A stretch of 64,000 bases of DNA, taken from Pelomyxa schiedti (taxonomy: Eukaryota; Protista; Evosea). The notes beneath the pieces were generated by a model. It searched no databases. It saw nothing but the letters and a program-made list of their open reading frames with translations, and was not told the origin of the DNA. The stretch covers positions 80,868-144,867 of the forward strand of contig JAHLWZ010000799.1 in assembly GCA_020536535.1 (NCBI GenBank). The letters run 5' to 3'. Shown in pieces: positions 1-47,849 of the stretch. The translations under genes were made by a program, and so were the position numbers. Position 1 is the first letter of the stretch. The number at the start of each line of letters is the position of its first letter.

Positions 1-2893
1 TATGTACTTTTCCACTTTTTTGTTTTTCTTTTCTGTGAACAGTAACTTATCGGAGAACATAAACATGTGCCTGGGGGAATGTGGGTATAAAATTTGTTCC
101 TTAGGATGTACCTGGTCTTGGATTTCTTCTTTAAAAAGAAGGACACTTCCCCATCCCACAAGAAGATTCGCTCATCATCTGCCTTCATAAACTTCGAGGT
201 ATGAGTAATAATAACGGCTACAAGAAACGTGTACCTTGGCAATCTCAGAATAGCCCCCAAGCTTATTGATTGCGGCATATATCACTCTCTTTTGTTCAGC
301 AAGTCCCAATGCTTGTTGCACAACCTTGCAGTGGCAAGATTGTCAGTGGTTTCATGAAAAAACAAAAACATGAAATACTTGATTTGTTTTTCCAATGTAA
401 GATAGGGCTTCTGTTAAAGAGGCTGCTTCGGGATGTGATGGAGGTGTATTCTCCACCATGCATTGTAAAACTTGGTCATATTGCTTTATTTGTTGTATAG
501 GACAAGACAGCAAGTCTCGTAAAGGAGGTGCTTTCATAGATGCCGTCTTGTTATTCTTTTATTTAAAAAGATACTTCTCCCAACCAACCTTCTGTTTGAT
601 GAAGTCGACAAAGGCAGTATTTTCCCTCTCTAATCTTTCAAGTGTATCGGCATGAACGGCTGAGTGTTTCACAAAACTTGAATATATCCTAAATCTGGAA
701 GCAATGGACGTAAACAGTATGCCTAATCCGTCTACAGCAGGCCAGAAGTCCAATATCTTTCTCATTGAATACTTAAATGGGTAAAGCCCTTGAGGGAATA
801 AGTACCTTTTCCAGGTTTTGGTAAATAGCTTTGTGGAGCACAAACAAAGGGCGAGCTTCCCCAAATAGCATTGTGATCTCATCCTCAGTCATTATTGGCT
901 GCTGAGTTCCATTTGAAGCCAGGGCCTGATCACGCTGTTCTTGGAGAGGTTTCAAAAAACTCTATGTGTGAAGGTCAAACAAGGTATTGTTTCTTTTTTT
1001 TTTTTGTCCTACCTCAGAGAGACAATCAAGTTTGCCCACCAAAACACGCTCTGTACGAAGTAGCTGTTTAAATGCTTCACTTCTGCCTTTGATATATCTG
1101 GGGACTGCCAGGAAAGTTGATGAACAACTTACAGTGAGAAGTACATACGAAGTGATTTATAATATCTTCGAGCAAGCCACCCTCGTACTCGTGCTTGTGC
1201 TTTTACAAGTAATCTATACGATCGAGCAAACTAGTAAAAACTGTTTGAGTGCAGCTATTGGAAAAAAGAAATACCTTCATAAACTCCCTGCAAGATTTTA
1301 TTATGTCACCCTAACAAAACAAAAGCTCAGTAAAAACTCATTCCACAAGAAGATTACACACTGCTGCTGTTGTAAGGGGAGATGGGGCAGGAGGAGTGTG
1401 AGGCATTCTTTCTTTGATTTTTTCTTTGAGATACTGAGATTGAATATTTTGAAATCCAAGGCACTTGAAAATGAGGTCTACTAGTTGCCTTTGGGCTTCA
1501 GCAAGCGAGGCCTCATTGGGAGACTGTTTTGAAGAGAAAATTATTAAGTCTCACAGAACAATGGCCTTACCGCAACAAATTGTTCACAAGCTGTTATTAT
1601 CGCCGGCTTTGACGAGATTAGCTCCAAAAAAAAGAGAGAAATGGTACATAAAACTTGTCTGTAACAAATTTTGGCCTAATTTTTGTTGATGCCTGATCCA
1701 CAAAAAAGTCAGTGTTGAGTTTATTGAAACCATGCATCAGCATTATCTTACTAAACACATATTTCCAGGATTCTGTCCACAACTTGGGAAATCAAAGTAA
1801 GTAGAGTGAAACGCAAGGGGTTGCAACTGACATTGGCACGGTTCTCTGATGTCAAGTCAGGAAGCCAAGAAATATCCACTGGGGTTGCGGGTATGATTGG
1901 TGGTTTTGATACAGAAACACTACTAGTGAGCTGTGATTCAGTACTAGGTGCTGTTATTGGTGATACAGAAATAGGGGTAACTGTTGTCGTTTGCTGAATT
2001 ACAGGGGTGGATAATGGAGTAGGTGGGGGTATGTCAAATGAAGGAGGAGGGATATCTAAAGAAGGCGGTGGTAATATAGGTTGAAATGAAGGGATGACTG
2101 CTGGAGCTTGTATAAGTGGTGCAATGGATGTTACACTATTTACTGGAGAAGGAGGGGTGATGATACTGCTACTACTGGGTGGTGGTGGTGCAATATTACT
2201 TGGAGGAGGCGGAGCAGCATTAGTTGGGGGTGGAGGAGGAATAATCACAGGAGGGGTAGTAATAGTAGGAGCAGTGATACTACTAGGTAGGACAATCTGA
2301 ACTCCACAAACACCCAAGTTAGGTAGGGACAGAGTGTCAATATGCACAACCGGCGGAGGAATTTGAACTGGTTCGGTGCCGGGGGTTGGAATTGGAGGGG
2401 GTATTACAGCAGAAGTGAATGCAGGTGGTGGAATATCAACAACCACCCCCGGAAGCTGTGGTGGGGGTGGCAACCCGGAGCTCTCATTCAGAGCCATAAC
2501 CTGAGACTGCGAATCCTCCTCGTAAGGGTTGTAGTTACCGCCGCCATAATAGGAATCCGCAGAGGGCGGGGTCGAGACCGCGGCACCGCTGGTTGAATTC
2601 GCAGAGGGAGAAGTGGGGATGGGGGCGGGAGAGGGAGAGGGAGACGGAGACGGGGTCGGCGAGGGGGGGCAGGGGGCGGGGGCGCGGGCCGCGGGGGGCC
2701 GGGGAGCCGCGGACGGCGGGGGCCGGGCGGCGCCCCCTCCGGGCGTGGCCGCGCCCCAGGAGGAACCCCCGCGGGTGGCCAGCGGCGAGGAGGGAGAAGG
2801 AGGGGCCTGGGGGGCCAGCCCGCGCGGGGGTCCCGTCGACGTCCTCAGCGGCGGCTGCTGCGGGGTGGCCGTGGGGGGCGGAATGTCTGCCAT
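1..2893 (-). CDS. Rho GEF (DH-PH) with long Pro-rich N-terminus; multi-exon, 3' end runs off the window
   Basis: ATG at 2893 (MADIPPP...). Later exons read FLKPL...EDEITMLFGEARPLFVLHKAIYQNLEK, LGILFTSIASRFRIYSSFV and LRDLLSCPIQQIKQYDQVLQCMVENTPPSHPEAASLTEAL, a typical Dbl-homology pattern. PH-like exon (ERIFLWDG) near 130-240. Confidence 0.85.
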
Positions 2894-3183
2894 TGAGCCC
2901 TGTGTGTTGTTCGGGCACGTATGTACCTCACAGCACGAATGATGCAAAGATTTCTTTGCTTTAGACGAAAAAACAGCATGGGTGAACCCATTTTTAGGTA
3001 GGTGCACGGAATTCTTCACAGCTCTCAGCGTGGGTGCGGGCACTAACGAGGCGCGTGAGAAGTGAAGTTCGAGAGCTATATACTGAACAAATAAACATGT
3101 TTCCTTATACAGGGTACATTACTGTAGTAACACTAGTGCCTGAAAAGTGCAATCAAAAATTCTTTGCTTGGTTTTTTGTGTTT

Positions 3184-5069
3184 CTAGGATGTGAGGCTTG
3201 GGAGGGGTTCGTTGCAGGAAGAGCAAAAGATAGAAGCTGAGGGCCAAATCTGTTGCACGGAACGAACAATGTCGGGTAGCATGTTTCTGGCAACCTCCTG
3301 CAAAATTGATTTGGTATGGGTTTGGCATTTTGGAAGTACCTTGGAGTGGGCTGTGGGAAGTTGGTCATACTCCACATATAATTTCTTTGAAGAACTTCGG
3401 GGAGTGTCACATACAGCACAGGAATCCGCCTCTGGACTGTTCTGTGATGTGCAGCACTCACAGACCCACTGTGTAGAGTCCTGCCAGTCCCGGCTGTTAC
3501 TTTCTGGGGTGGGTGTTCTTTCAGAACCACACAGAGTGCATGCGGTGCTGGATGAAGCGTTTATGAAGGTACAGGTAGAACAGGACCAATTTCCGGCAGC
3601 GTGATTGGATGATGTGGAAATTGGTGGCTTCCGGGATCCGCACACCTGGCAGGATCCACAATGTGACTGGTTGACAATGGTACATGAGCTGCAGGACCAA
3701 CTCCTGCAGACGGTGCAGTGCAAGTTGGCTGTGGGGTTGGCTCGGCCACAGTTACAGTTCCACGAGATTACTTTCTTGGGAGATGATACTGTGACCCCAA
3801 ATAAAAACGTGGGCCTGCCTCCGCTCATTTCTATCCTGGTGTCCACCAGCTTCACACCGCTGTCGGGTGGAATTGCTGACGGTCTGCATTTCCCGGACAG
3901 CCAAACTTCGTCGTGGAGGGCAGTGAGCAACGTGAGTCTGGCTCCTGACATCTCTGCTCCACCAACGGTCCAATGCAACCGTGACAGTCCATTAAAATGG
4001 AGAAGTTCCAGTCTTTGTCCAGAACGGATCGTTGCTTGAGAGGGAGTCAATCTCAAGTCCTTGCACCAGAGTGCAGTATAGTGTCCGCCACAGAGAACAC
4101 ACCAAATGGGAAGTCGCGGAAACCGAACGCAAGACTGCTGGGTGATGATCCCGATCTCCGATGCCATCGGCGGGTTGGAATATGAAGGCGGATAAACTAT
4201 GGCAAGGTGTGAGGGGTCATCACTCACGTCACTCAGAGCACAGCCATACAGGAGCAAGTGAACAAGTTCTTGAGTGCAGAAAAGCCCCTTCCTGCTGTAG
4301 CTGGGCTCGAGCATTGTTGAGAATGAAGATGCAGCACAAAGTCTGACGTCTCGCAACAATGATTCGACGCCTAGTGACTTATTGTCATTGTTGAGTTGCC
4401 AATAAAATAAGACTACCTCTTGTGGCAATGCACGAGTACACCAGCAGCAATATCCCACCACTCCGCATAAACTGAGGCAAAAGGATCTTGATTTGATTGT
4501 GAAGATCACTTTGAGGAACTCTGATCAACTGCACATGTGCATTAAATTCACCAATTGTCCCAAAAGGGCCAGGCTCACGCAAAACAGCAAGTGACACTAA
4601 ATGGTAATTTTAATAAAACTCTTAAAAAAAAAAAAAGAAGGATCAGTAGAGGGAAACATAGATAAATATGCCTACCAAAAGTTTCTGTCATGCAACCTTC
4701 CAGAATATTCGCCAGGGCGCGAACCATCACCTCGTCGACACTCAAGTCCTCGAGAGACCCACAATTTGCAACCACGCGAACCACGTGGCACTGCACGGCA
4801 GCCAGCACTCCGCACGGCCCGTCCTCCTCCTGGGGCCCCACAAGCGGCCACTCCGTCGGTGGATTTTGTTGGCGATCCACAGACGCGGACGCCACGCCGG
4901 TATAAGAAGGCACTGGCAAAGCCTGTGCGGCTCTGCCGTCGCACGCGGCATCATGGGACGACAGCACAAGTGGGTGACTGAGCCACGTAGAGCATGAGCT
5001 GGAAGAGCCAACCGAGGTCGGGAACACGAGACCACTCACAGCCCCCAACAGCGAACCATCACTACTCAT
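3184..5069 (-). CDS. MINDY-3/4-family deubiquitinase with four RanBP2/NZF zinc fingers
   Basis: Catalytic motifs QEEDGPCGVLAAVQ, PIWCVLCGGHYTALW and LLHFNGL. Four W-x-C...N...C-x2-C fingers. Introns near 4600-4675 and about 4380-4415. Confidence 0.8.
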
Positions 5070-5078
5070 TCTTCAAAG

Positions 5079-5360
5079 AAAGGATCTGAAGGTTTGTCGC
5101 TGATCTTTCCGAGCGCAGGAAGTTTATAGCCATTATGAATGTGAGGCCAGAGTCTTTTCAAGTTCAAGAAGGGGAGGAGAGGTCTAAAAGACTTTAGAAC
5201 CAATTGGCTGAGTGGTCTAATCGCCAATCGTGGGATCGCCGGTTCGGTTCTGCCCAAGGTTCATCAGGGACTGGAGGGGTGACCACCAATTTTTTGACAG
5301 AGGACCTCAGCCCTCGTCAGACGAAGGGTGAAAGCCTCATTTTGTGGTTGGCGCTATGGA
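5079..5360 (+). ncRNA. Candidate structured element containing a Pol III A-box match
   Basis: Long terminal stem 5123-5147/5334-5360 with G-U pairs and several inner hairpins. TGGCTGAGTGG (5205-5215) fits the A-box, GGTTCGGTTC (5241-5250) is an imperfect B-box, and there is a T6 run at 5290-5295. Confidence 0.3.
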
Positions 5361-5417
5361 GAACAATGAAATGAAGGAGTGTTATTAATCACAACCAAGG
5401 TTGGAGCATCACAAAGA

Positions 5418-5759
5418 GTTCATATGAAGAGCTTCATCAAGCTGTTGCAACCATGCTTGGGAACAACCCATAGAGGGAAGTCGACGAACTGGTGAGGGAA
5501 AAACCTGGTCACTGAGAGAATAGGGGTGCAGCAACTTTNNNNNNNNNNNNNNNNNNNNNNNNNNNNNNNNNNNNNNNNNNNNNNNNNNNNNNNNNNNNNN
5601 NNNNNNNNNNNNNNNNNNNNNNNNNNNNNNNNNNNNNNGTTCATATGAAGAGCTTCATCAAGCTGTTGCAACCATGCTTGGGAACAACCCATAGAGGGAA
5701 GTCGACGAACTGGTGAGGGAAAAACCTGGTCACTGAGAGAATAGGGGTGCAGCAACTTT
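5418..5759. other. Scaffold gap (100 N, 5539-5638) flanked by an exact 121-bp duplication; assembly artefact
   Basis: 5418-5538 is identical to 5639-5759. Confidence 0.9.
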
Positions 5760-7263
5760 CAGGGAGCGCCATTGTGAACAACCTTGTTCCAGTTATGGCA
5801 TCCATGACCACCGTCCAAGTGCGTAGCCCACCAAAGGCAGCAACACTCTTTTTGGAGAGAGTCTTGACATTGGCACATGTGTTAGGCGTAACTTCCCTGG
5901 AGAAGAACAACAGCCCGCATCCAGCGGCTACAGAATGAGTTCCCCATGGGAAGGTGTGGTTCACGCACGGTTGGCGCTTTCTGTAGGCGGTCTTCTCCTT
6001 GCGGCTCCTTGTTTTCCGGGAATCACCAGGTGCCAAGGTGGTGCAGTTGGGGTACCAGAGCGGCTCGAGTGAGTAGAGAGACACAAATGGATGCCGGCTT
6101 GTTTGCTCATCCTTGAGTGTGCACAGGTGGGCATCGTCAACAGCAAGCACACCCATGTCGGTGGTATGCTGGAGCCATGTTGTAACCAGTCCAGAGTGTA
6201 ACTGTACGAGTCTCTCCCTGTAGCAGTCATCACACGTGGACATGCCTTTGGTGAAGTGAAGGTAACTGGCATTGTTGTCAACAAGTGGAATGTTGTTAGA
6301 CCCAAGTCCCAGATTGCCCATGTTGTTGTGTTGCACAGCCTTCATGGGGTTGGCGATGGATCGCTCGTTCCACAGTGTGAACAGATCAACGGCAATACAG
6401 TTGAGAGTGTGATCGATATCCCTCTTGTACCATATTTCCACCGCGTCACCATCGGGGTCATACTGACCAGTCTGTGAGATAAACCTGATGTGGAGTATCC
6501 CGTTCAAGGAGCCGCCAATCAGCACGTGCTCCTGAGGTACACCTTGAACCACCCTAAAGAGAACAAGCCGGTCAGAGAAGGGCATCACAATCCAGCTTCT
6601 GTTTCTAGCAATAAGCTCGTAATTGCGTTCTCCAGGCAGAGGAAGAGATACATCACCAATGAGGTTCCGGTCCTGAACAGGGCGGCCAACAACAGTTGGC
6701 AGGCGCACGAGTCCCTGTGTCGGGGAGATAGCGAATATCACGCAGGCATCACCAATCTCTTCATTCAGCTGCAAGCAAACCAACTTGCCACGTCGCACCA
6801 CCCAGTCCCTGCCTATCATTTCCAGCACCGTGGGAGGCAGCATCACAACGGGGCCGCTGGGCCCGGAAGCCCGCAATCTCGCGTCGGGAGCAGCGGCGAG
6901 GCCCGGCGCTGAGGCGGCGGAGGCGGAGGCGGCGGCCGAAGAAGAGGGCGCGGGAGGGGGCCACGCGGGCGAAGAGGCAGGGGGGGCAGCCAGGGACGAG
7001 GCGAGGGAGGGCACGACGGGGGCAGGGCCGGAGACGGGCGCGAAGGCGGAGGCGGAGGCGCAGGCGCAGGCCAGGGCCACGAACTGGTCCCGGGCCATCA
7101 GGGGCGGGGGCGTCGCAGGGTCGTCGTTTGATATGTTCACGACGTGGACCTCCCCGTTCGGTCCCAATGAATTGTAGAGCGCCTGCATCAACTCCAGGGG
7201 TGTGTGCTGGGTGTGGTCGGTTGTCGGCGCGAAATCTCGGCACTGACAACTCGAAAACAGCAT
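5641..7263 (-). CDS. Intronless lineage-specific orphan family protein (copy A, divergent)
   Basis: 540-aa ORF sharing motifs with the ORFs at 13082-17485: QF.A.A.A, IG..WV, NR.W.VM, VD..HL, VAAGCGLL, DA..G..LF.M. Confidence 0.75.
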   Translation of the reverse strand: MLFSSCQCRDFAPTTDHTQHTPLELMQALYNSLGPNGEVHVVNISNDDPATPPPLMARDQFVALACACASASAFAPVSGPAPVVPSLASSLAAPPASSPAWPPPAPSSSAAASASAASAPGLAAAPDARLRASGPSGPVVMLPPTVLEMIGRDWVVRRGKLVCLQLNEEIGDACVIFAISPTQGLVRLPTVVGRPVQDRNLIGDVSLPLPGERNYELIARNRSWIVMPFSDRLVLFRVVQGVPQEHVLIGGSLNGILHIRFISQTGQYDPDGDAVEIWYKRDIDHTLNCIAVDLFTLWNERSIANPMKAVQHNNMGNLGLGSNNIPLVDNNASYLHFTKGMSTCDDCYRERLVQLHSGLVTTWLQHTTDMGVLAVDDAHLCTLKDEQTSRHPFVSLYSLEPLWYPNCTTLAPGDSRKTRSRKEKTAYRKRQPCVNHTFPWGTHSVAAGCGLLFFSREVTPNTCANVKTLSKKSVAAFGGLRTWTVVMDAITGTRLFTMALPESCCTPILSVTRFFPHQFVDFPLWVVPKHGCNSLMKLFI

Positions 7264-7455
7264 CAGTCAAGTTTGTTTTTGGGGTTTTTTTCTTGAAATA
7301 TCAAACAAAAAATAATTTTTTTTTCCCTGGGTGACAAGACCCTAGGATACGGAGATATTGCACACAACGTGTTGTGAGTGATCTGGTAAGAATTGTTGTG
7401 CAGAAAAGCACTAATGTAAATAGAAGAATGGGGATGCATACTAGGTACTTTTCCA

Positions 7456-8587
7456 TTATAAAGAAGCGGTGTATGACTGTGTGACGAATTTGTTAACTAT
7501 TAAGCATCTGCAGATATCTGGAGCCACCTGATCCATTATGTTTTCACAGAGGTGTATTGGGGAAGCTTGAACTACACTTTCTGCGAGTACAGCATCCTCA
7601 CTCAAATAATACACATACAAAGGGGGTTGGGAGTGCCAAGAATGTTGGAAATTGCATTGAAAAGTTCTTCAGTATCGAGTTGAAAGGAATGCACTACAAA
7701 CTTTCTGAAAGAAGTGATATATGCAAGCACGGACATAACGTTAGTGTTGGTATGCTACAAGTCAACTTAAAGCCAACGATCCAGCTATTCAAATAAGGGA
7801 AGTACCTGGCCAATGTTTTCGCAACATGTGCCTGCTCGGTATTTCTCCATAGTCGTGTGGAACGATACAAACAAATCAATTTGAGGTCTACTGGATCATC
7901 CAGGGCGCTCCACTCCACTGGAGTAACATTTTCAGGAAACTGTGAGTACAACCAGCGCTAGCAGTAAAGTGTGAATTCCAGAAGAAAGAAACTGATTATC
8001 GTGTTAGCTGATTGCATAGACAACAAAAGGCGTACCTTCTTTGTTCAGTTTTCTACGTATCTTTGTCCTACTCAGAGAAGAAAACTGGAGTTGATTTGGA
8101 TATGCCTTAAAAATAGGGTTATTTTAACACGTTGTCAGATTACAGAAATAAAGCAGTTTGCAGTATTTAGTACACCGCAACTTTGGTTTTTAACCCTGGC
8201 TGAGAAGGCATTACGACCACTGTACCTTCACGTCATTGCGTGCCCATGCACGATCCTCCAGAGATCAATTCATCACTTGAAGTCGAAGTGCCCAAAAGTT
8301 CCTTGTTCCATTCACTAATAGCTCTACGGTATTAACATGTCATTCCAACTCCCTTCCAGTACATTATAAAACGCCAACCGTCACTAAGCACGCAGTTCCG
8401 TAGGCTACGGACCGTGGCCAGGTTTTTTTTTAATCCTCTTTCTGTTGGTAACTAAGACAGGAGAGCGAAGACTACTACAACCAAACAACGAACATATATG
8501 AATTTGGTTGGCATCCCCAGCAATAGCGCTGCCAAGATCTCCAAAGAGTGAGTTACGCTCGTTTGGTGGAATGGCTTTGCTACTCAT
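7456..8587 (-). CDS. Hypothetical multi-exon protein
   Basis: ATG at 8587 (MSSKAIPPNERNSLFGDLG), several GT-AG introns and coding-like exons (PVEWSALDDPVDLKLICLY; KFVVHSFQLDTEELFNAISNILG). No family recognised; exon structure uncertain. Confidence 0.5.
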
Positions 8588-8954
8588 TTGCTGTCTCGTT
8601 TTCCTACTAACTACAGGCAAGAAGAAAACGAGACGGTGGGTCTTACGAAGTGTCACAGTGGGTGCATTCAAAAAAAAAAAAAAGCACATTTCACTTTCCC
8701 TTCACAAAAACCTGCTCCAAGGCATGCAACCTGTGATAACGTAAGCTTCCATATTTATTAAAGGTAATGACTAACGTTATCGTAGGTGGGTGACACTGAC
8801 GTCTGGACTCTTGGCTTTGATCAATTCTGTTAAGAATAGGCACCTTCTGGACGAATTTGCACAAGTTATCATCAACTCTAATGACAAATTTACTCACTGA
8901 GAGCCAAGGATTTCAAGCTTCGGGTCCAGTTGAGAACTTCTGGTTGTTTTTTGA

Positions 8955-40700: not shown

Positions 40701-43700
40701 GTTGGAACAGCAGGGCCTCCTCCTGGTTGAGGTGCCAAATCAGAGTATTCATTCCCATCAACATAGACTTTGCATCCAGTTACAACACGATTTTTCTCAT
40801 CAAGAATGGACAATGCTTGCCCGGCAACAGAAACACGCTCAATAAATCGGAATCCACCACGCCGTATAACGGCACGAGAACTTTTTCCTTGTGCAATGAA
40901 CTCTATCACATACACACCGCGTTGGGACCCAAGTTCAGGAAAAGCGAACTTTCGCTCCACCCGCTGGAGTGGAGAGACATCATCATATTTGTATTGAGTT
41001 TCGAAATTTGGTGCCAGTCCATCAAGATTAATATCAGTCGTTATTTCCTCTGTGCTTTGTTTATAGAACGCTTCTGTGTTGATCTCGAATACTTTTACAA
41101 GTAGTGATCGGACATTTTTAATAAACACAGAGAGGGAAATTGGTGTCTCTGGATCAGGGTAGTATTTTGGATTTGATGGCGCAAGCTCCAAATCCACTCT
41201 GTCCTGGAGTTGTTGCTGAATGTCACTGGGAAGGTGCGCTTGTACATCCGGTTTTTGTAGCATCTCAAACCAGACTGCAGGTTTACCTTGCCCACTCAGC
41301 AATCGCGTCGTTGCTAAAATACTTCGTAGCCACGAGTCTTCAAGAAACTCGTTAAATGCAGTGCCATCATTCTCTGAAGGGTTGATGGAATAGAACTTTT
41401 GAATATATGCCCGTAACATCTCTTCTGCATCGCTGGAAGGTGGGTCGAGATTGGGTATAGAGCAGGCTCCATCATCAAGCGAGGCATACTCCACTGAAGG
41501 GGTTTTATTTAACCTCGTTCGCCATTGAGAAGACTGGAGATGGGTGGTACTATCGCTTCGAGGAATAGCAATAAACTCACGGAAGCGTGCCCAATTAAGT
41601 TGATCTGCGCTCCTCTCGGCCTCAAGCCAGTGGTAAAGAATAAGTGCCTGAAGGCTTATGTACTGGACAGAGCATGGATCAGGTGCGCGCTTTTTGCAGT
41701 CTTTCACAAAATTGTATATTGCCTCGAAATAGGGTCGCTTCTGAGAGAAATCAAGAGTTGACCAACCGCCAAGATCCGCGTTGGGTAGTAATTTTCCGAG
41801 ATAGCAAGTCACAAAGTGCGATGAAGAGAAAAGGTACTGCCCATAGACACGGTGCGCCATGAAGTCTTGGAGGGTTTTCAGTGTGAACATTCTTTGGTAC
41901 GACTTCAGGGCTTGATGGACTGTGCGGCACCGAGTATTCTCGGCATTAATCTTGAAATCTTCTAGAGTTTGTCCGTGATAGTTCTTTTGGGCTACTACTG
42001 TCTCGTGGTGAGATATAGATTGAGCAATTTCCCGGAATCTGAAATCCAAGTAACTTTTTTTTTTTTCTGTTAGAAGACATAAGCAAAGAGTATGATTTAC
42101 CCAATCAGCACATTTAAGAACTCGGGCTGCCCGGGGTGTGTATAATGTGAGAGAGTATCACTGAGAAGGGACTTTTCAAGGTGACCAGAGATCATCCCTA
42201 TTTTCAACAAAGTCAAAGTTAAGGAACGTTAAACAATAAATTGGCTACCAAGCCACCAAGCTGTGGATGAGTTTTTGGCCAGGAAGCTCAATGATGGGTT
42301 ATGGTGAGAACTTGACTCCAACTCAGAGGCAAAACTTTTGGGAATTTCTCCATTAAAGAGGTTTGCTTCCGCGGCAATCAGTGATTGATCAAGTTTAGTG
42401 GTGTAGGATGGGGATGTGGGAATATAAGGGGAAGGCCTGGAAGGAGATTAGTTTCTCCTTATGAAAAAAAAAGGGGGTCAAACGATGGCCAAGTTAATCC
42501 TCTTTTTTCTTTTGGTGTCCACAGCGAGTCATTTTTAAACCTATATATTTTCTTTAGTGGTAAACAAAATCTAGTCGAGAAGACAGCACCATGACGAGAA
42601 GTGACTGTGCAACTTGGTAATTGGTCCATGTTTCTTCTTTCTCTCTGGTGGGTAATTCATGAAAGCAGCAATTTTTCCGAGAAAAATCATGGACTCTTCT
42701 CTGGACATCTAATACAGTTAAAAGGTGGGGAGGGTAGTGGAACAAACCATATTTGCGTCAAATCTTCCAAATCTGGCCCGCCACTGCAATTCGCGGTATC
42801 TTTCTCCTTTCCCAAATTGGGAAAAGCAAGTCATGAACTCCTTCCTGAAAAAAAAATAAGGAAGAACTCTCAAAGGATATTCCACAACCAACGAGGCCCT
42901 CCAGTACCCTTCGAAGTATGCAATAATTGCAGTCCAGTAAAAAAGAACCTAAAATACTTAACCGTGAAAAGAGAAACAACTAGACTCACAGCTGTTCACT
43001 TCCAGGTGTTGCCAAAGATAGGGCATCAGTTCTCGAAGGGGAAAGGGCAAACGTTCTTTTGGGTACACAAAAAAAAAAAAATTAGTTGCAGGAAAACCTC
43101 AACCTAGGAAAAAAGCATACTCTAGGAAACCATAAGGGGATCTTGATGGGTCAATCTCCTCAAATGCACCCGAAGTGGGAGGAATAAGTGGTGTAAAACT
43201 CTGAGCTCCATAAAGGGGAACAACAACTATTTTTTTTGGGGAGGAAGAAAAAAAAAATTCGTCAGTCACTGGAAAAGCTGATTTGGAAACTAAGCTTACC
43301 AACTGGAGGAGGAGTGGTGGAAGTCGACGTTACTTCCGGCTTTGCAGTTGGAATAGGAAGAACTTCCGCTTTTGCTTGATTGAAACATCCCTCACATACA
43401 TCATACTGGCAGGGATCGCAATGCCAAACCTACAGACCCATAAGTACAAATTTATGGCAATAACTGGTAGGTGAGAGTGTGTAGTAGTAGTATTATTAGG
43501 TGGCTTAGAATGGTAACGGGTGAAGAAAGGGGAAAAAAAAGAAAAAAAAAAAATTACCGGAATCTCCTTGCCGACTTTTTTACACAGGTCGCACTGCCAA
43601 CCGGCTTTATACTGCGGGATGACAAGTGACAACTCGTGCTCATGGGAGGGGTGTGTGCCCTTGGGCGTCTTCTTGTGCCTCGAGTGGTGGTGCCCATGCG

Positions 43701-43923
43701 ACGACCCCGTGCTCGTGCTGTTGTCGGCCGGAGGGGGCGTCGTAGTCGTCGTGGTTGTGCTGCTGCCGCCGCCGCCGGTGGTGGTGGTCGTTGTCGACGC
43801 CGCGGGGTCGTCGCGGTGGGGCTGCGGTGGCGTAGTGGGCTGCTCGGCGGCGGGCTTGGAGCTGCCCCCTTTGCCCTTGTCGTTGCCACCTTTGTCCTTC
43901 TTCTTGCCAAACACGTTGAGCAT
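34794..43923 (-). CDS. Giant (~2,700 aa) protein: N-terminal DC1/C1-like zinc finger plus conserved large uncharacterised domain (AbpF-like) with a polyproline insert
   Basis: ORFs 37652-42049 and 34794-37718 join via intron 37669-37718. Upstream exons give MLNVFGKKK...HPSHEHEL...WQCDLC...WHCDPCQYDVCEGC and GFLETFALSPSRTDALSLATPGSEQLFFF. Motifs LGEEYRYVLDRK, YQHLEYAPLINARAH and AYVKVY...FWKDLYTDLRGRADY. Confidence 0.75.
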
Positions 43924-44223
43924 TGTTGTGTGTGTCGGTTGAGGAGGAGGGTTTTTTTTGTGTGTGTGGTTCTTTTTTGTTTGGTTTGTTTGTTTGAATT
44001 TGGGTTTGGAGAATTGTTCGTTGAGCGGTTTTCGACTGCATTTGAAGAGTGCAACGTTTTCCAGCAATGGAAAACAAAAACCCCTCCATAGTGGTGTTCT
44101 TGGTCGAAAGTAAGTGGTACCAATTGGCACTAGGACCAAGCAAACAAGATTGGCCAAGGTGGTAGCGGTCCAAATTTCGCTTCGGATCTCTGCGGTTTGA
44201 GAAGCGAAAAAAACTCCGTGGCG

Positions 44224-45995
44224 ATGGGTAAGGCGTCGTTGGTGTCGCCGGATCTGTGGGGGATGTATTCGAGAAAACTGGTGCAACGTGGGTATACACT
44301 TGAGCGTTAGATCTGCGGCTGTGTGGTAGCGACTTACGTGGTCTTCGTTTTTCTCTCTGGCAGGTTTGTTGCACCCGACTCGATGCGGAGACATCGAATT
44401 TCCACCAACCGCAGTTGGATCTGATTCTGTTGTTGTTACTCACGCAACCAACCCTGACGCCTTTATGGTCGTACGCGCGTCTGTGGGTGGAAAATCTTGC
44501 GGCGACGAAATTGCTTTGTCACTTCTTATTGACCGTTCCAACCACCGCATATTGGATTCGAAATTCCGAAGCTTTGGCTGCGGTTTCTCTATTATCTGCA
44601 TGGTGTAAATGTAACTCATTTAAGGGGTTGCTATTGCCGCCAGCGATATGATTGCGGAACTTTGTATTGGAAAGACTGTGGATGAAGCTCTCTTGGTTTG
44701 TTACCTTCATAAAACCCACCTACATGCTTAATTACACGTACTTTGGCAGATTACAAATCCATCAGTGGAAGCGGCACTAAGAGATACACCCGATACACCT
44801 TCCATGCCATCTAAGAGGCTACAATGTAGTGTTCTTGCCAGTTCAGTTATTCGCAATGCTGTTGCTCAATACAAAGGTTTGCAACTTTAAACATTGCTTG
44901 TATATAAAAGCCCATGCTAGGTATTTCTGTAAGTGACTTAGATGGAAGTTCGGATGTATGCCGATCGAATCCTTTTGGTGATGGCGAAGTAAATAAACCT
45001 TTCAAAAAAAAAAGTGTTTTCAAATGGACAAGCTCCGGACTTGTTGAACAAAACATTGATATCATTGTTGAAAAAGCACTTGAGATACATGTCAATGGAA
45101 AGGCGTAAGTAACCTAAATCCTACAAAGGAAGATTGAGCATCCTTCAGATACTCAGTGACTATGCGCACTCCCCCAAAAGAAATGCGACCCAGGGATGAT
45201 GACCACGCACTTGTTGCTGGGTTTTGTTTCAGTGATGGAGTATTTTCCTCTTTCATCAAAGATGTTCGGTTTGCTATATCCAATTACTGTAGTACAGTTC
45301 TAATTCAAAAAAAACAAAAAAAGGAAGATTGCGCCATGCCAGTTCAAACCCCTGGGATCGAGGATGCTGGTAGAACTTAATGCTGACGCATCCAAGCTGT
45401 TTGCAGTTATGCAGACACGGAGTGCTTATAAGGCTGTAACTTCTTGCGGTCTTTGTGGGAAACATTCAGCTGATGTAACCCACTCCCGTATCAACTATCG
45501 TTACTTATTTCCCTCTCACAGGAAATTGAAGTACCATTGCAACATGTTCCCAATACTAAAGCCACAACCACATTCGAATCTATACAGAACATGCTCTCTC
45601 TCTTTGATGAAAGACAGAAAATGTACCAAATCACCCGCACGAGCCACGCAGCCGGATTGTTTGATCATCACGGCGCACTGGTCTCATTTGCGGAAGATGT
45701 TGGGAGACACAACGCTATGGACAAAGCTATTGGGCATATTTTACTTGCCGGTGGTGGACCTGGAGCTTCTGACGTGTGGAATGGTTGTGCTTTCTTAGCA
45801 CTTCTGTCATCACGCATTAGTTTTGAAATGATGCAGAAAGCCATTCGTGCCGGCATTCAAGTGGTGTGCGGCATTAGCGCCGCCACATCAGGAGCTGTTG
45901 CCCTTGCAGAGGAATACGGGGTTACCCTGGTAGGCTTCTTTGGCAGAAATGGCACTTTCGTGCTCTACACTCACCCCCACAGAATCGTTATGTGA
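44224..45995 (+). CDS. fdhD: NifU N-terminal (IscU-like) Fe-S scaffold domain fused to FdhD sulfurtransferase
   Basis: Spliced product MGKASLVSPDLWGMYSRKLVQRLLHP...KSCGD...SKFRSFGCGVAIAASDMIAELC...ITNPSVEAALRDTPDTP...LQCSVLA (epsilon-type NifU), then IVEKALEIHVNG..TMRTP..LVAGFCFSDG..TSCGLCG..HAAGLF..EDVGRHNAMDKAIG..SSRISFEMMQKA (FdhD). Confidence 0.9.
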
Positions 45996-46063
45996 ATAAT
46001 CTACTCTAAAATACTTTACCCCCTTTCTGTTCTTATCTCTTATCTGTATCGTTTGGCTTTTCG

Positions 46064-47849
46064 ATGGAACGGATACCGGACGCTGTTCTTGAGGCCATTG
46101 TGTGGTACTGTGTGTCGCCCCCACTGAAACCACTCAGCAACTCGGAAACTGCAACTACGACTGAGTCCCGGGACGGCTGCGGCTACGATTACACAGCCGT
46201 GGTGCAACCAACATCGCCGTGCGTGGCAGCCTCAGCAGCACTGAAGCTTACATATTATGGGACTGGCACGGGTGCTCCTGGCGCGGCTGTTGTTGATGTC
46301 CCCAGCGCCGTATTGATTTGGCAACTTGCAGAGCGAAGATTGCCATTGGTGAATTGTTGCCTGGTGTGCAAGAGATGGCGATCTGTGGTATGTATTGCTG
46401 TATTGATATTTAGATGCATGGATGTCAATGTGTCTGTTTTTTTTTTAGGATGTTGAGCGGGTGTTGACTGTGGGATATCACCACTAATTTTCTTAATGGC
46501 TTGTTTTGGGCTTGGCATGCAGGTGATTAGAATGTGTGCGGGTTCATTAATTGGGTTAATGAAGAGGATAGGCAGAGTATCACTGGCCAGGGACCCGCTT
46601 GCAACAAGTACTAGAAACTGCGGGTTCAACTCCGGCAGTGAAAAGGGCTCATTTCTTCATAATGTTTTGAAATCCATTGGCAGTAGCCCCGTCAATAGTG
46701 ACAACTACGGCCTTGAGTACATTGGAACCGGCGTTTCTGGGTGGGGTTGCTCTCTCAAGCCCTTGGCCAGGGACAATTATGAACACCTAAGCCAAGTAAG
46801 AGCCGTGAGATGGAGCAGTGACAGCACCAAATTTGCTTCCACTTCTTCAGAGGGGAAGCTTCTTGTCAGAGTGTGTAAGTATGAAACAGAAAGGCAATGT
46901 AACTAAATGAGAGCAAATGTTCAGAAATGGGGAAACCGTCGTATTTCGTTCCTCTCGACTGTACAGGTGGACGCGTATACTGATTGCTGCTGTTTCTCAC
47001 CAACAGGCAATTTGGTTGCATGGGCGTCATGCTGCAACAGTATTCAAGTCTAAAGCCTTGCTCTTTCTGACTGCAGTGTGTAGATACCTGGGGTTGCGCG
47101 GACATCACTAACAGAAAGCAACGCCCAATCATCAATAAGTTTGCTGTACATACAAGCTATGTGTCTTGCTTAAGGTTTATGGAGGAACACACTGTATTGT
47201 CTGCGTCAATTAATGGATTTTGCACGCTTACAGATATAACAACTGGGCTAAGCCTTGGAGCTCTCAGTCAAGAGGTAGAATTCGCAACCTTCTTGTTCTC
47301 TTGCCCTAACCCACAAAATGAACAGCAAGACATCTTCACACTGTGTGTGAGCCCCACTAATCGAGAAACATTTCTTATTGGCTCTACCATGGGGAAAGTG
47401 AGAATGTTTGATTGTCGGTGCCTTACATCGCCAACGATGACCTGGAATCTCTCTGCAACAGATGTGAATTCCCTAGAATTTTCTTCCTCCGGAATTATTG
47501 CCGCTGCTGGTTCTGGTGTGGGCTTCCTTCTTTCATCTTTATCAATAGACTAAGACCCAATACCTAAGATGAGGGCGCACGGGTATTTGACCTTCGGCAG
47601 AATTATTTGGCCAACACATTCACGCCATGGCAAGGAGTAAATTCGCTTTCATTCAGCTCCAGTGGGCACTTTCTCATCCTTGCGGCTCGCTCCAGTGTTC
47701 AGGCCTGGTCTGTACTGACCGGCAGGCGGGAGTGGGTTCACACCTGCCCAAACCACATCAGTAGTTTACAGGTGTCCCCTGACGGCAAATGGCTACTAAC
47801 AGGTGGCTGGGATTGTGTTGTGCGGTTGTATTCTGGAATGCGTGAATAG
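46064..47849 (+). CDS. F-box-like domain fused to a divergent G-protein beta-like WD40 propeller
   Basis: N-terminal IPDAVLEAIVWY...LVNCCLVCKRWRSV, then HLSQVRAVRWSSDS..ASTSSEGKLL, CCFSPTGNLVA, HTSYVSCLRFMEE, DIFTLCVSP, DVNSLEF..GSDE..RVFDLR, GVNSLSFSSSG and ISSLQVSPDG..LTGGWD, colinear with G-beta blades. Confidence 0.75.

Follow-up and report, generated by a model that had tools for sequence, protein, structure and literature searches.

A NifU-FdhD fusion gene in the anaerobic amoeba Pelomyxa schiedti and its possible role in sulfur transfer to formate dehydrogenase

Structure of the fusion gene and its product

We analyzed a 64,000-nucleotide stretch of DNA from Pelomyxa schiedti (NCBI GenBank assembly GCA_020536535.1, contig JAHLWZ010000799.1, positions 80,868 to 144,867 of the forward strand), hereafter the window, in which a single gene joins the N-terminal scaffold domain of NifU (NifU_N) to FdhD. 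Unless another contig is named, positions are those of the window. The region is almost certainly the nuclear gene Pelo_10620, which consists of eight exons encoding 469 residues and is transcribed and spliced to one mRNA for a protein in which the IscU-like N-domain of NifU precedes a complete FdhD. The assembly comprises 52.4 Mb in 5337 scaffolds and is 81.9% complete by BUSCO (PMC8887013). An earlier note, made from the letters of the window alone, had left open whether the fusion was already on record; Záhonová et al. 2022 (BMC Biol 20:56, PMC8887013) had reported it as NifU+FdhD.

The exons of Pelo_10620 have a combined length of 1410 nt, which corresponds to 469 codons and a single terminal stop (frame and arithmetic were scripted), and the seven introns, all GT..AG, measure 42-76 nt (Table 1). 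Upstream of exon 1 an in-frame stop occurs at 44131-44133, with no ATG in between. The earlier note had placed the first four introns and exon 5 at exactly these positions and had read one open reading frame (ORF) after intron removal, and our model of 469 codons with one terminal stop agrees with it. The published protein text of Pelo_10620 (Table S2, PMC8887013) crosses all seven exon junctions found here and runs through the junction at intron 4 with no break (..AQYKGISVSD..), and the published cDNA primers match the window exactly at 44224-44244 (forward, + strand) and 45972-45992 (reverse, - strand). The gene was amplified from cDNA and its product, tagged with green fluorescent protein (GFP), was localized to the mitochondria of yeast (PMC8887013). 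Our locus is therefore the same gene with an identical sequence; its exon structure, the remnant of the central NifU domain and the His-to-Gln change described below are not discussed in that paper.

Profile and homology searches were run exon by exon, and the exons were joined only for the frame, the stops and the residue positions. Pfam NifU_N matched exon 2 (33.6 bits, cut-off 22, E 4.8e-08, profile 25-61) and continued collinearly through exon 3 (19.4 bits, profile 64-84) and exon 4 (19.2 bits, profile 86-121); a six-frame search of the genome gave 57.1 bits over profile 25-123 at the same locus. Pfam FdhD-NarQ matched exon 8 (145.2 bits, E 3.6e-42, profile 99-236). Exon 5 alone had no Pfam match, and exons 5-7 taken singly had no FdhD-NarQ match. 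The completeness of FdhD was read through an orthologous protein, P0003, from the metagenome sequence L016 described below, which covers FdhD-NarQ profile 10-236 and aligns with residues 48-275 of E. coli FdhD (4PDE), the cysteine loop included.

All three scaffold cysteines are present in the fusion: Cys67 in CGD, Cys94 in FGCG and Cys144 in QCSV. The first two align with human ISCU chains, and Cys144 aligns with L003, a canonical NifU paralogue of P. schiedti. The histidine expected ahead of the third cysteine is missing, the fusion having Gln143 in that place (compare KMHCSV in L003 and KRLRCSV in the orthologue L017). The FdhD loop SCGLCG, a CxxC that serves persulfide transfer in this family, and the nucleotide/cofactor-binding motif EDVGRHNA fall in invariant or near-invariant columns of an FdhD alignment, in which E, D, R, N and D are invariant. 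The four-cysteine, BFD-like [2Fe-2S] central domain of NifU is absent; a one-cysteine remnant (VCRS..G..EV) aligns with CAC..LG..EV of the paralogue and is followed by FdhD. No exon gave a Pfam match to the C-terminal Nfu domain, and the last 250 residues are FdhD. What the earlier note had recognized from the letters, namely a NifU_N domain with its three cysteines, a central domain reduced to VCRS, the loss of Nfu and a full FdhD with both motifs, was thus recovered by profile searches and alignment.

The fusion point lies within exon 5. The start of this exon is homologous to the inter-domain linker of NifU and its first central-domain cysteine (..EIVCACARVTLGTIKEV in the paralogue on contig C926, ..SSDVCRSNPFGDGEV in the fusion), in an alignment that also takes in the orthologues L016 and L017. 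According to the earlier note the fusion was independent of splicing at the junction. The shared-exon argument stands, because exon 5 opens with NifU-homologous linker residues, so that NifU-derived sequence and the start of FdhD share one exon; removal of intron 4, however, is formally required. When intron 4 is retained, the NifU frame stops at TAA 44888-44890, and the ATG at 44914, in frame with exon 5, could open an ORF for FdhD only. Retention of any single intron leads to a premature stop, and the GFP signal at the C-terminus in yeast therefore needs a fully spliced, fused mRNA. Public reads over 44000-46200 came from three DNA-like runs, whose contigs were unspliced (for example 44238-44802, through introns 1-3), and from one single-cell RNA run; they contain no joints and speak neither for nor against splicing.

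We considered whether two neighbouring genes, one for NifU_N only ending at TAA 44888-44890 and one for FdhD starting at ATG 44914, had been mistaken for one because of a predicted intron. Only 23 nt separate the stop from the in-frame ATG, and the public reads hold no splice-spanning RNA, but this reading is highly improbable and close to refuted, since the published cDNA amplicon covers every codon of the gene, a GFP signal was observed, intron 4 has the same donor as intron 6 (GTTTGC), NifU-derived residues open exon 5, the orthologue L017 has no ATG before the FdhD part, the orthologue L016 has no intron at all at the domain junction, and the fusion was seen in a Mastigella transcriptome (PMC10711303).

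Table 1. Features of the fusion gene in the window, its orthologues, and candidate client genes elsewhere in the P. schiedti genome
Feature	Sequence	Position	Strand	Description
NifU-FdhD gene	window	44224-45995	+	eight exons, seven GT..AG introns, one 469-codon frame
Exon 1	window	44224-44287	+	start codon and NifU N-terminus (MGK...LW..YS)
Intron 1	window	44288-44363	+	GT..AG
Exon 2	window	44364-44582	+	NifU_N core; Cys67 (CGD, 44498-44500), Cys94 (FGCG, 44579-44581)
Intron 2	window	44583-44624	+	GT..AG
Exon 3	window	44625-44695	+	middle of NifU_N (VAIAASDM..ELCIGK)
Intron 3	window	44696-44749	+	GT..AG
Exon 4	window	44750-44876	+	end of NifU_N; third scaffold cysteine, Cys144 (44825-44827), with Gln143 before it
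Intron 4	window	44877-44920	+	44 nt, GTTTGC..TAG
Exon 5	window	44921-45104	+	fusion point: NifU linker remnant, VCRS (Cys174, 44959-44961), then FdhD N-terminus (..IVEKALEIHVNGKA)
Intron 5	window	45105-45148	+	GT..AG
Exon 6	window	45149-45268	+	FdhD N-terminal domain (..MRTPP...ALVAGFCFSDG..)
Intron 6	window	45269-45323	+	GT..AG
Exon 7	window	45324-45474	+	FdhD cysteine loop SCGLCG 45442-45459; Cys303, Cys306
Intron 7	window	45475-45521	+	GT..AG
Exon 8	window	45522-45995	+	FdhD C-terminal domain; EDVGRHNA 45693-45716 (EDVGRHNAMDK from 45693), stop codon 45993-45995
Orthologue L016	JGI 3300028241	2107-3717		GC-rich; nearly intron-free; CGA instead of CGD
Orthologue L017 (copy L018)	ENA ERZ21831265, 627-kb contig	1822-3534		
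Formate dehydrogenase gene	C538	~3170-8850	-	large, intron-bearing; strong Fdh-alpha body, ferredoxin motifs
Pelo_718 (published as FdhF)	C53	~43500-46260	-	divergent molybdopterin oxidoreductase

Orthologues, paralogues and other FdhD fusions

Mastigella eilhardi also has a NifU+FdhD fusion (Záhonová et al. 2023, Microb Genom, PMC10711303), and orthologous NifU_N-FdhD genes were found on two eukaryote-like metagenome contigs (L016 and L017, the latter with a copy, L018), where they have C2-domain, Ras and NUDIX genes as neighbours. All of them share the two-domain order of the P. schiedti fusion and retain its scaffold cysteines, three in number, as well as its linker cysteine and its FdhD motifs. 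The exon order of L017/L018 is that of the P. schiedti gene, with no ATG ahead of the FdhD part; in L016 one open frame runs from NifU_N through the linker into the first residues of FdhD, with a single short in-frame intron further on. Identity to L017 was 77% in exon 3 (71% to the paralogue L005), 72% in exon 6 (59% to L016), 69% in exon 7 (34-69% over the orthologues) and 68% in exon 8 (52% to L016).

The three scaffold cysteines are kept in 3/3 orthologues even though identity in NifU_N is just ~30-45%. The residue before the third of them varies: where the canonical L003 has His, the fusion has Gln, L017 has Arg and L016 has Leu. The CGD aspartate is kept in the fusion and in L017, L016 having CGA. 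Together with the long branch of the domain in a published tree (PMC8887013), this pattern suggests that NifU_N is under selection for its cysteines and its fold but has ceased to be a standard scaffold, a state that would suit docking or the relay of persulfide better than cluster assembly.

Compared with the three-domain NifU of Archamoebae and epsilon-proteobacteria (in P. schiedti, the paralogues on C926 and C237), the N-domain of the fusion is homologous from the first residue, with the three cysteines, and the linker and first central-domain cysteine are still recognizable. The three-domain protein, in contrast, has full [2Fe-2S] and Nfu domains and a His before the third cysteine, where the fusion has the one-cysteine remnant, no Nfu and a Gln. 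We infer that a duplicated archamoebal NifU lost its [2Fe-2S] domain, apart from the one-cysteine remnant, together with Nfu, and that a bacterial-type FdhD took their place. The FdhD part belongs to the same family as E. coli FdhD (4PDE) over the FdhD length, with the two-cysteine loop (CGVCG in E. coli) and EDVGRH. In E. coli, FdhD is a separate protein and binds the cysteine desulfurase IscS directly, whereas in P. schiedti an IscU-like domain is fused in front of FdhD and NifS-type desulfurases replace IscS.

A protein-library search with exon 8 returned 6675 FdhD relatives, of which the top three were fragments of eukaryotic orthologues (70, 66 and 55% identity) and the rest reached at most 54%. 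Among the matches listed, bacterial relatives of the FdhD domain were 29-41% identical and came from Deltaproteobacteria, Bacteroidota, Acidobacteriota, Actinomycetota and others; they single out no donor. Twenty long FdhD relatives were scanned for additional domains, and none carried NifU_N; some were MobA-FdhD, 2-thiouracil-desulfurase-like-FdhD, PP-loop-FdhD or tandem FdhD proteins and the others FdhD only. Within this limited sample of 20 long relatives, NifU_N as a partner of FdhD was seen only in pelobiont eukaryote sequences. The prokaryotic fusions share its logic, in that FdhD is covalently tied to a module that handles a cofactor or sulfur.

Desulfurases, molybdoenzymes and cofactor genes in the genome

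The P. schiedti genome has one FdhD locus, which is the fusion gene, and three NifU_N loci, as published (PMC8887013), including two canonical three-domain NifU genes. NifS-like matches occur on at least nine contigs. One NifS-like gene, at C871:1063-2229 (Aminotran_5, 229 bits), is a 440-aa frame without introns, unlike most genes here, and may belong to the extra NifS copies of lateral origin mentioned in PMC8887013.

Two genes of the type that binds bis-molybdopterin guanine dinucleotide (bis-MGD) were found, on C53 and C538. The C538 gene carries an active-site stretch, CARLCH, with Cys and not selenocysteine, that aligns with solved formate dehydrogenases; reading of the ORF translations also gave an N-terminal part that is 2Fe-2S-like and a flavoprotein part resembling GltD. 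The gene probably corresponds to Pelo_6878, listed as 'formate dehydrogenase' in the ISME J 2023 dataset. The gene on C53 is Pelo_718, whose exons gave weak, non-specific matches common to the Fdh-alpha, dimethyl sulfoxide-reductase, nitrate-reductase and other bis-MGD families; the exon at its putative metal-ligand cysteine, used singly as a query, had no match among solved structures. Because C538 combines a strong Fdh-alpha body with the CARLCH active site, it would be a better candidate client of FdhD than Pelo_718 and the most plausible one in the genome. Molybdenum-binding domains of the xanthine-dehydrogenase/aldehyde-oxidase type were found at no fewer than six further loci (C866, C829, C290, C400, C185 and C897), several of them split by introns, making the molybdoenzyme set surprisingly large for an anaerobic amoeba.

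We attempted to trace the molybdenum cofactor (Moco) pathway by six-frame profile searches of the genome. MobA is present at C441:362-1454, with introns and collinear over three exons, and a near-copy lies on C2198. Within MobA on C441 (L013:~1100-1210) a run of N is flanked on either side by the same ~27-residue coding stretch, which is probably a scaffolding artefact that repeats part of an exon. A MoeA-like ORF (C189:12178-13257) adjoins an actin gene and holds the MoeA_N and MoCF_biosynth domains without MoeA_C. MoaA (C-terminal domain), MoaC and MoaE were not detected in the genome by these searches. The method was reasonably sensitive, as it found 30-aa exons of MobA and NifU, but absence of the three genes is not proven since the assembly is only ~82% BUSCO-complete. 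The best match of the moaA model was rejected as MoaA, being a viperin-family radical S-adenosylmethionine (SAM) protein. An intron-free 293-aa ORF at C875:13896-14777 (- strand) scored 248 bits with a prokaryote-type viperin family radical SAM model (cut-off 180).

The published list of P. schiedti metabolic genes (ISME J 2023 dataset) has two 'molybd' entries, MobA and an ABA3-like sulfurase, and the string is absent from the main text of PMC8887013, PMC10711303 and the ISME J 2023 paper; in keeping with this, the Moco pathway is not discussed in PMC8887013. In the library searched, no paper tied Pelomyxa to molybdenum or Mastigamoeba to molybdopterin, papers on Archamoebae and molybdenum at large lying outside this scope. 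Both sequenced P. schiedti symbionts encode Moco genes. The earlier note had singled out a genome with no molybdoenzyme or Moco pathway as the finding that would undo its functional model; what we found instead were C538, Pelo_718, the xanthine-dehydrogenase-type loci, MobA and the MoeA-like gene. The functional model is thus not refuted, because a client and the late maturation steps exist in the genome.

A candidate sulfur relay and its alternatives

In E. coli, FdhD takes its sulfur from IscS, its direct partner. In Archamoebae the NIF system has replaced IscS, and a fusion that brings NifU_N to FdhD would therefore restore an interface with a desulfurase, since NifU_N is the domain that naturally docks with NifS-type cysteine desulfurases. 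We favor, with modest confidence and as a proposal built on sequence, a mechanism that would run as a whole from docking on NifS through the FdhD loop and the cofactor to the activation of formate dehydrogenase. The NifU_N domain would dock the fusion protein on one of the many NifS paralogues of P. schiedti, and persulfide sulfur would pass to Cys303/Cys306 of FdhD, either directly or through the scaffold cysteines. FdhD would hold the molybdenum/tungsten (Mo/W) bis-guanine-dinucleotide cofactor, made by MoeA and MobA, on which the sulfur would form a sulfido ligand; the sulfurated cofactor would then be inserted in a Cys-type formate dehydrogenase, most plausibly that of C538. The relay from the NIF system to Moco put forward in the earlier note fits the sequence and coincides with the published hypothesis for Pelo_10620 (PMC8887013). 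The authors of that paper noted the role of E. coli FdhD between IscS and FdhF, citing the transfer of sulfur from IscS to FdhD, proposed the extra NifS copies as partners of the fusion, and suggested that these proteins activate formate dehydrogenase, a situation unique among eukaryotes. Since the gene, its fused structure, the cDNA behind it and the idea of a sulfur relay had all been published before, the finding of the fusion adds no discovery.

Several points weigh against this proposal. NifU_N may no longer act as a normal scaffold, given the Gln, Arg or Leu in place of His, the CGA of L016 and the long branch of the domain in a published tree (PMC8887013). With MoaA, MoaC and MoaE not detected, the source of the pterin is unexplained. 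No splice-spanning RNA was seen in the public reads over the locus, where the sole single-cell RNA run yielded one 181-nt contig inside exon 8. Finally, partner and client may sit in different compartments: the fusion went to yeast mitochondria, whereas both tested NifS proteins were cytosolic in yeast and the FdhF candidate Pelo_718 has no targeting signal (PMC8887013). An N-terminal targeting signal was scored for the fusion, with mixed results among predictors (PMC8887013). The earlier note had seen no presequence and had placed the protein in the cytosol. We confirmed that the N-terminus has no extension, in that the protein starts ~10 residues before the conserved Trp in the fusion, in two orthologues and in the cytosolic paralogue Pelo_14273; a cytosolic placement is nevertheless not supported, as the published prediction and the yeast mitochondria point to an organelle.

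If NifU_N were a working Fe-S (iron-sulfur) scaffold, the fusion might mainly deliver clusters, alone or with sulfur, to formate dehydrogenase or to FdhD. The three cluster-ligand cysteines, kept together with the CGD aspartate in the fusion and in L017, are compatible with such a role, as are the several Fe-S domains of the C538 dehydrogenase. We regard it as unlikely, since the His before the third cysteine is lost in 3/3 orthologues, L016 lacks the Asp as well, and two canonical three-domain NifU genes already serve cluster assembly. To our knowledge, moreover, FdhD neither needs nor carries an Fe-S cluster.

We judge it rather unlikely that the client of FdhD is something else than a true formate dehydrogenase, or that the fusion is a general persulfide relay. 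FdhD homologues accompany other bis-MGD enzymes too, as the NarQ in the Pfam family name recalls, but FdhD-dependent sulfuration is documented for formate dehydrogenases. Pelo_718, the obvious example of such a client, was named FdhF (PMC8887013) and matches the bis-MGD families only weakly and non-specifically; on the other side, a canonical Fdh-alpha gene with a Cys-His active-site pair exists in C538.

The domain could also be a decayed passenger with a structural role, or an N-terminal signal for the import of FdhD into a mitochondrion-related organelle, with FdhD obtaining its sulfur by itself. Its long branch and altered residues agree with decay, and the predicted N-terminal targeting signal and the mitochondrial localization in yeast with import (PMC8887013). 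We nevertheless consider this improbable: the three cysteines are conserved despite the low identity between orthologues in NifU_N, the N-terminus without extension resembles that of the cytosolic paralogue, and the predictors disagree.

On the sulfur-relay reading, the fusion offers a rare example in which a eukaryote apparently matures a bacterial-type Mo/W enzyme with parts from two bacterial systems, and it was for this reason that the authors of PMC8887013 called it unique among eukaryotes. A side observation that matters is that no early Moco genes were found in a genome with so many genes for molybdoenzymes. It is conceivable, and we offer it tentatively, that P. schiedti has a Moco pathway of late steps only (the MoeA-like protein, MobA, NifU-FdhD and the ABA3-like sulfurase), without the synthesis of cyclic pyranopterin monophosphate and molybdopterin, and obtains the pterin from its prokaryotic endosymbionts or from prey. 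This apparent late-steps-only pathway lies outside the finding of the fusion itself and is the only part that may be new. If it is true, NifU-FdhD would belong to a 'finishing line' on which the eukaryote completes an imported cofactor.

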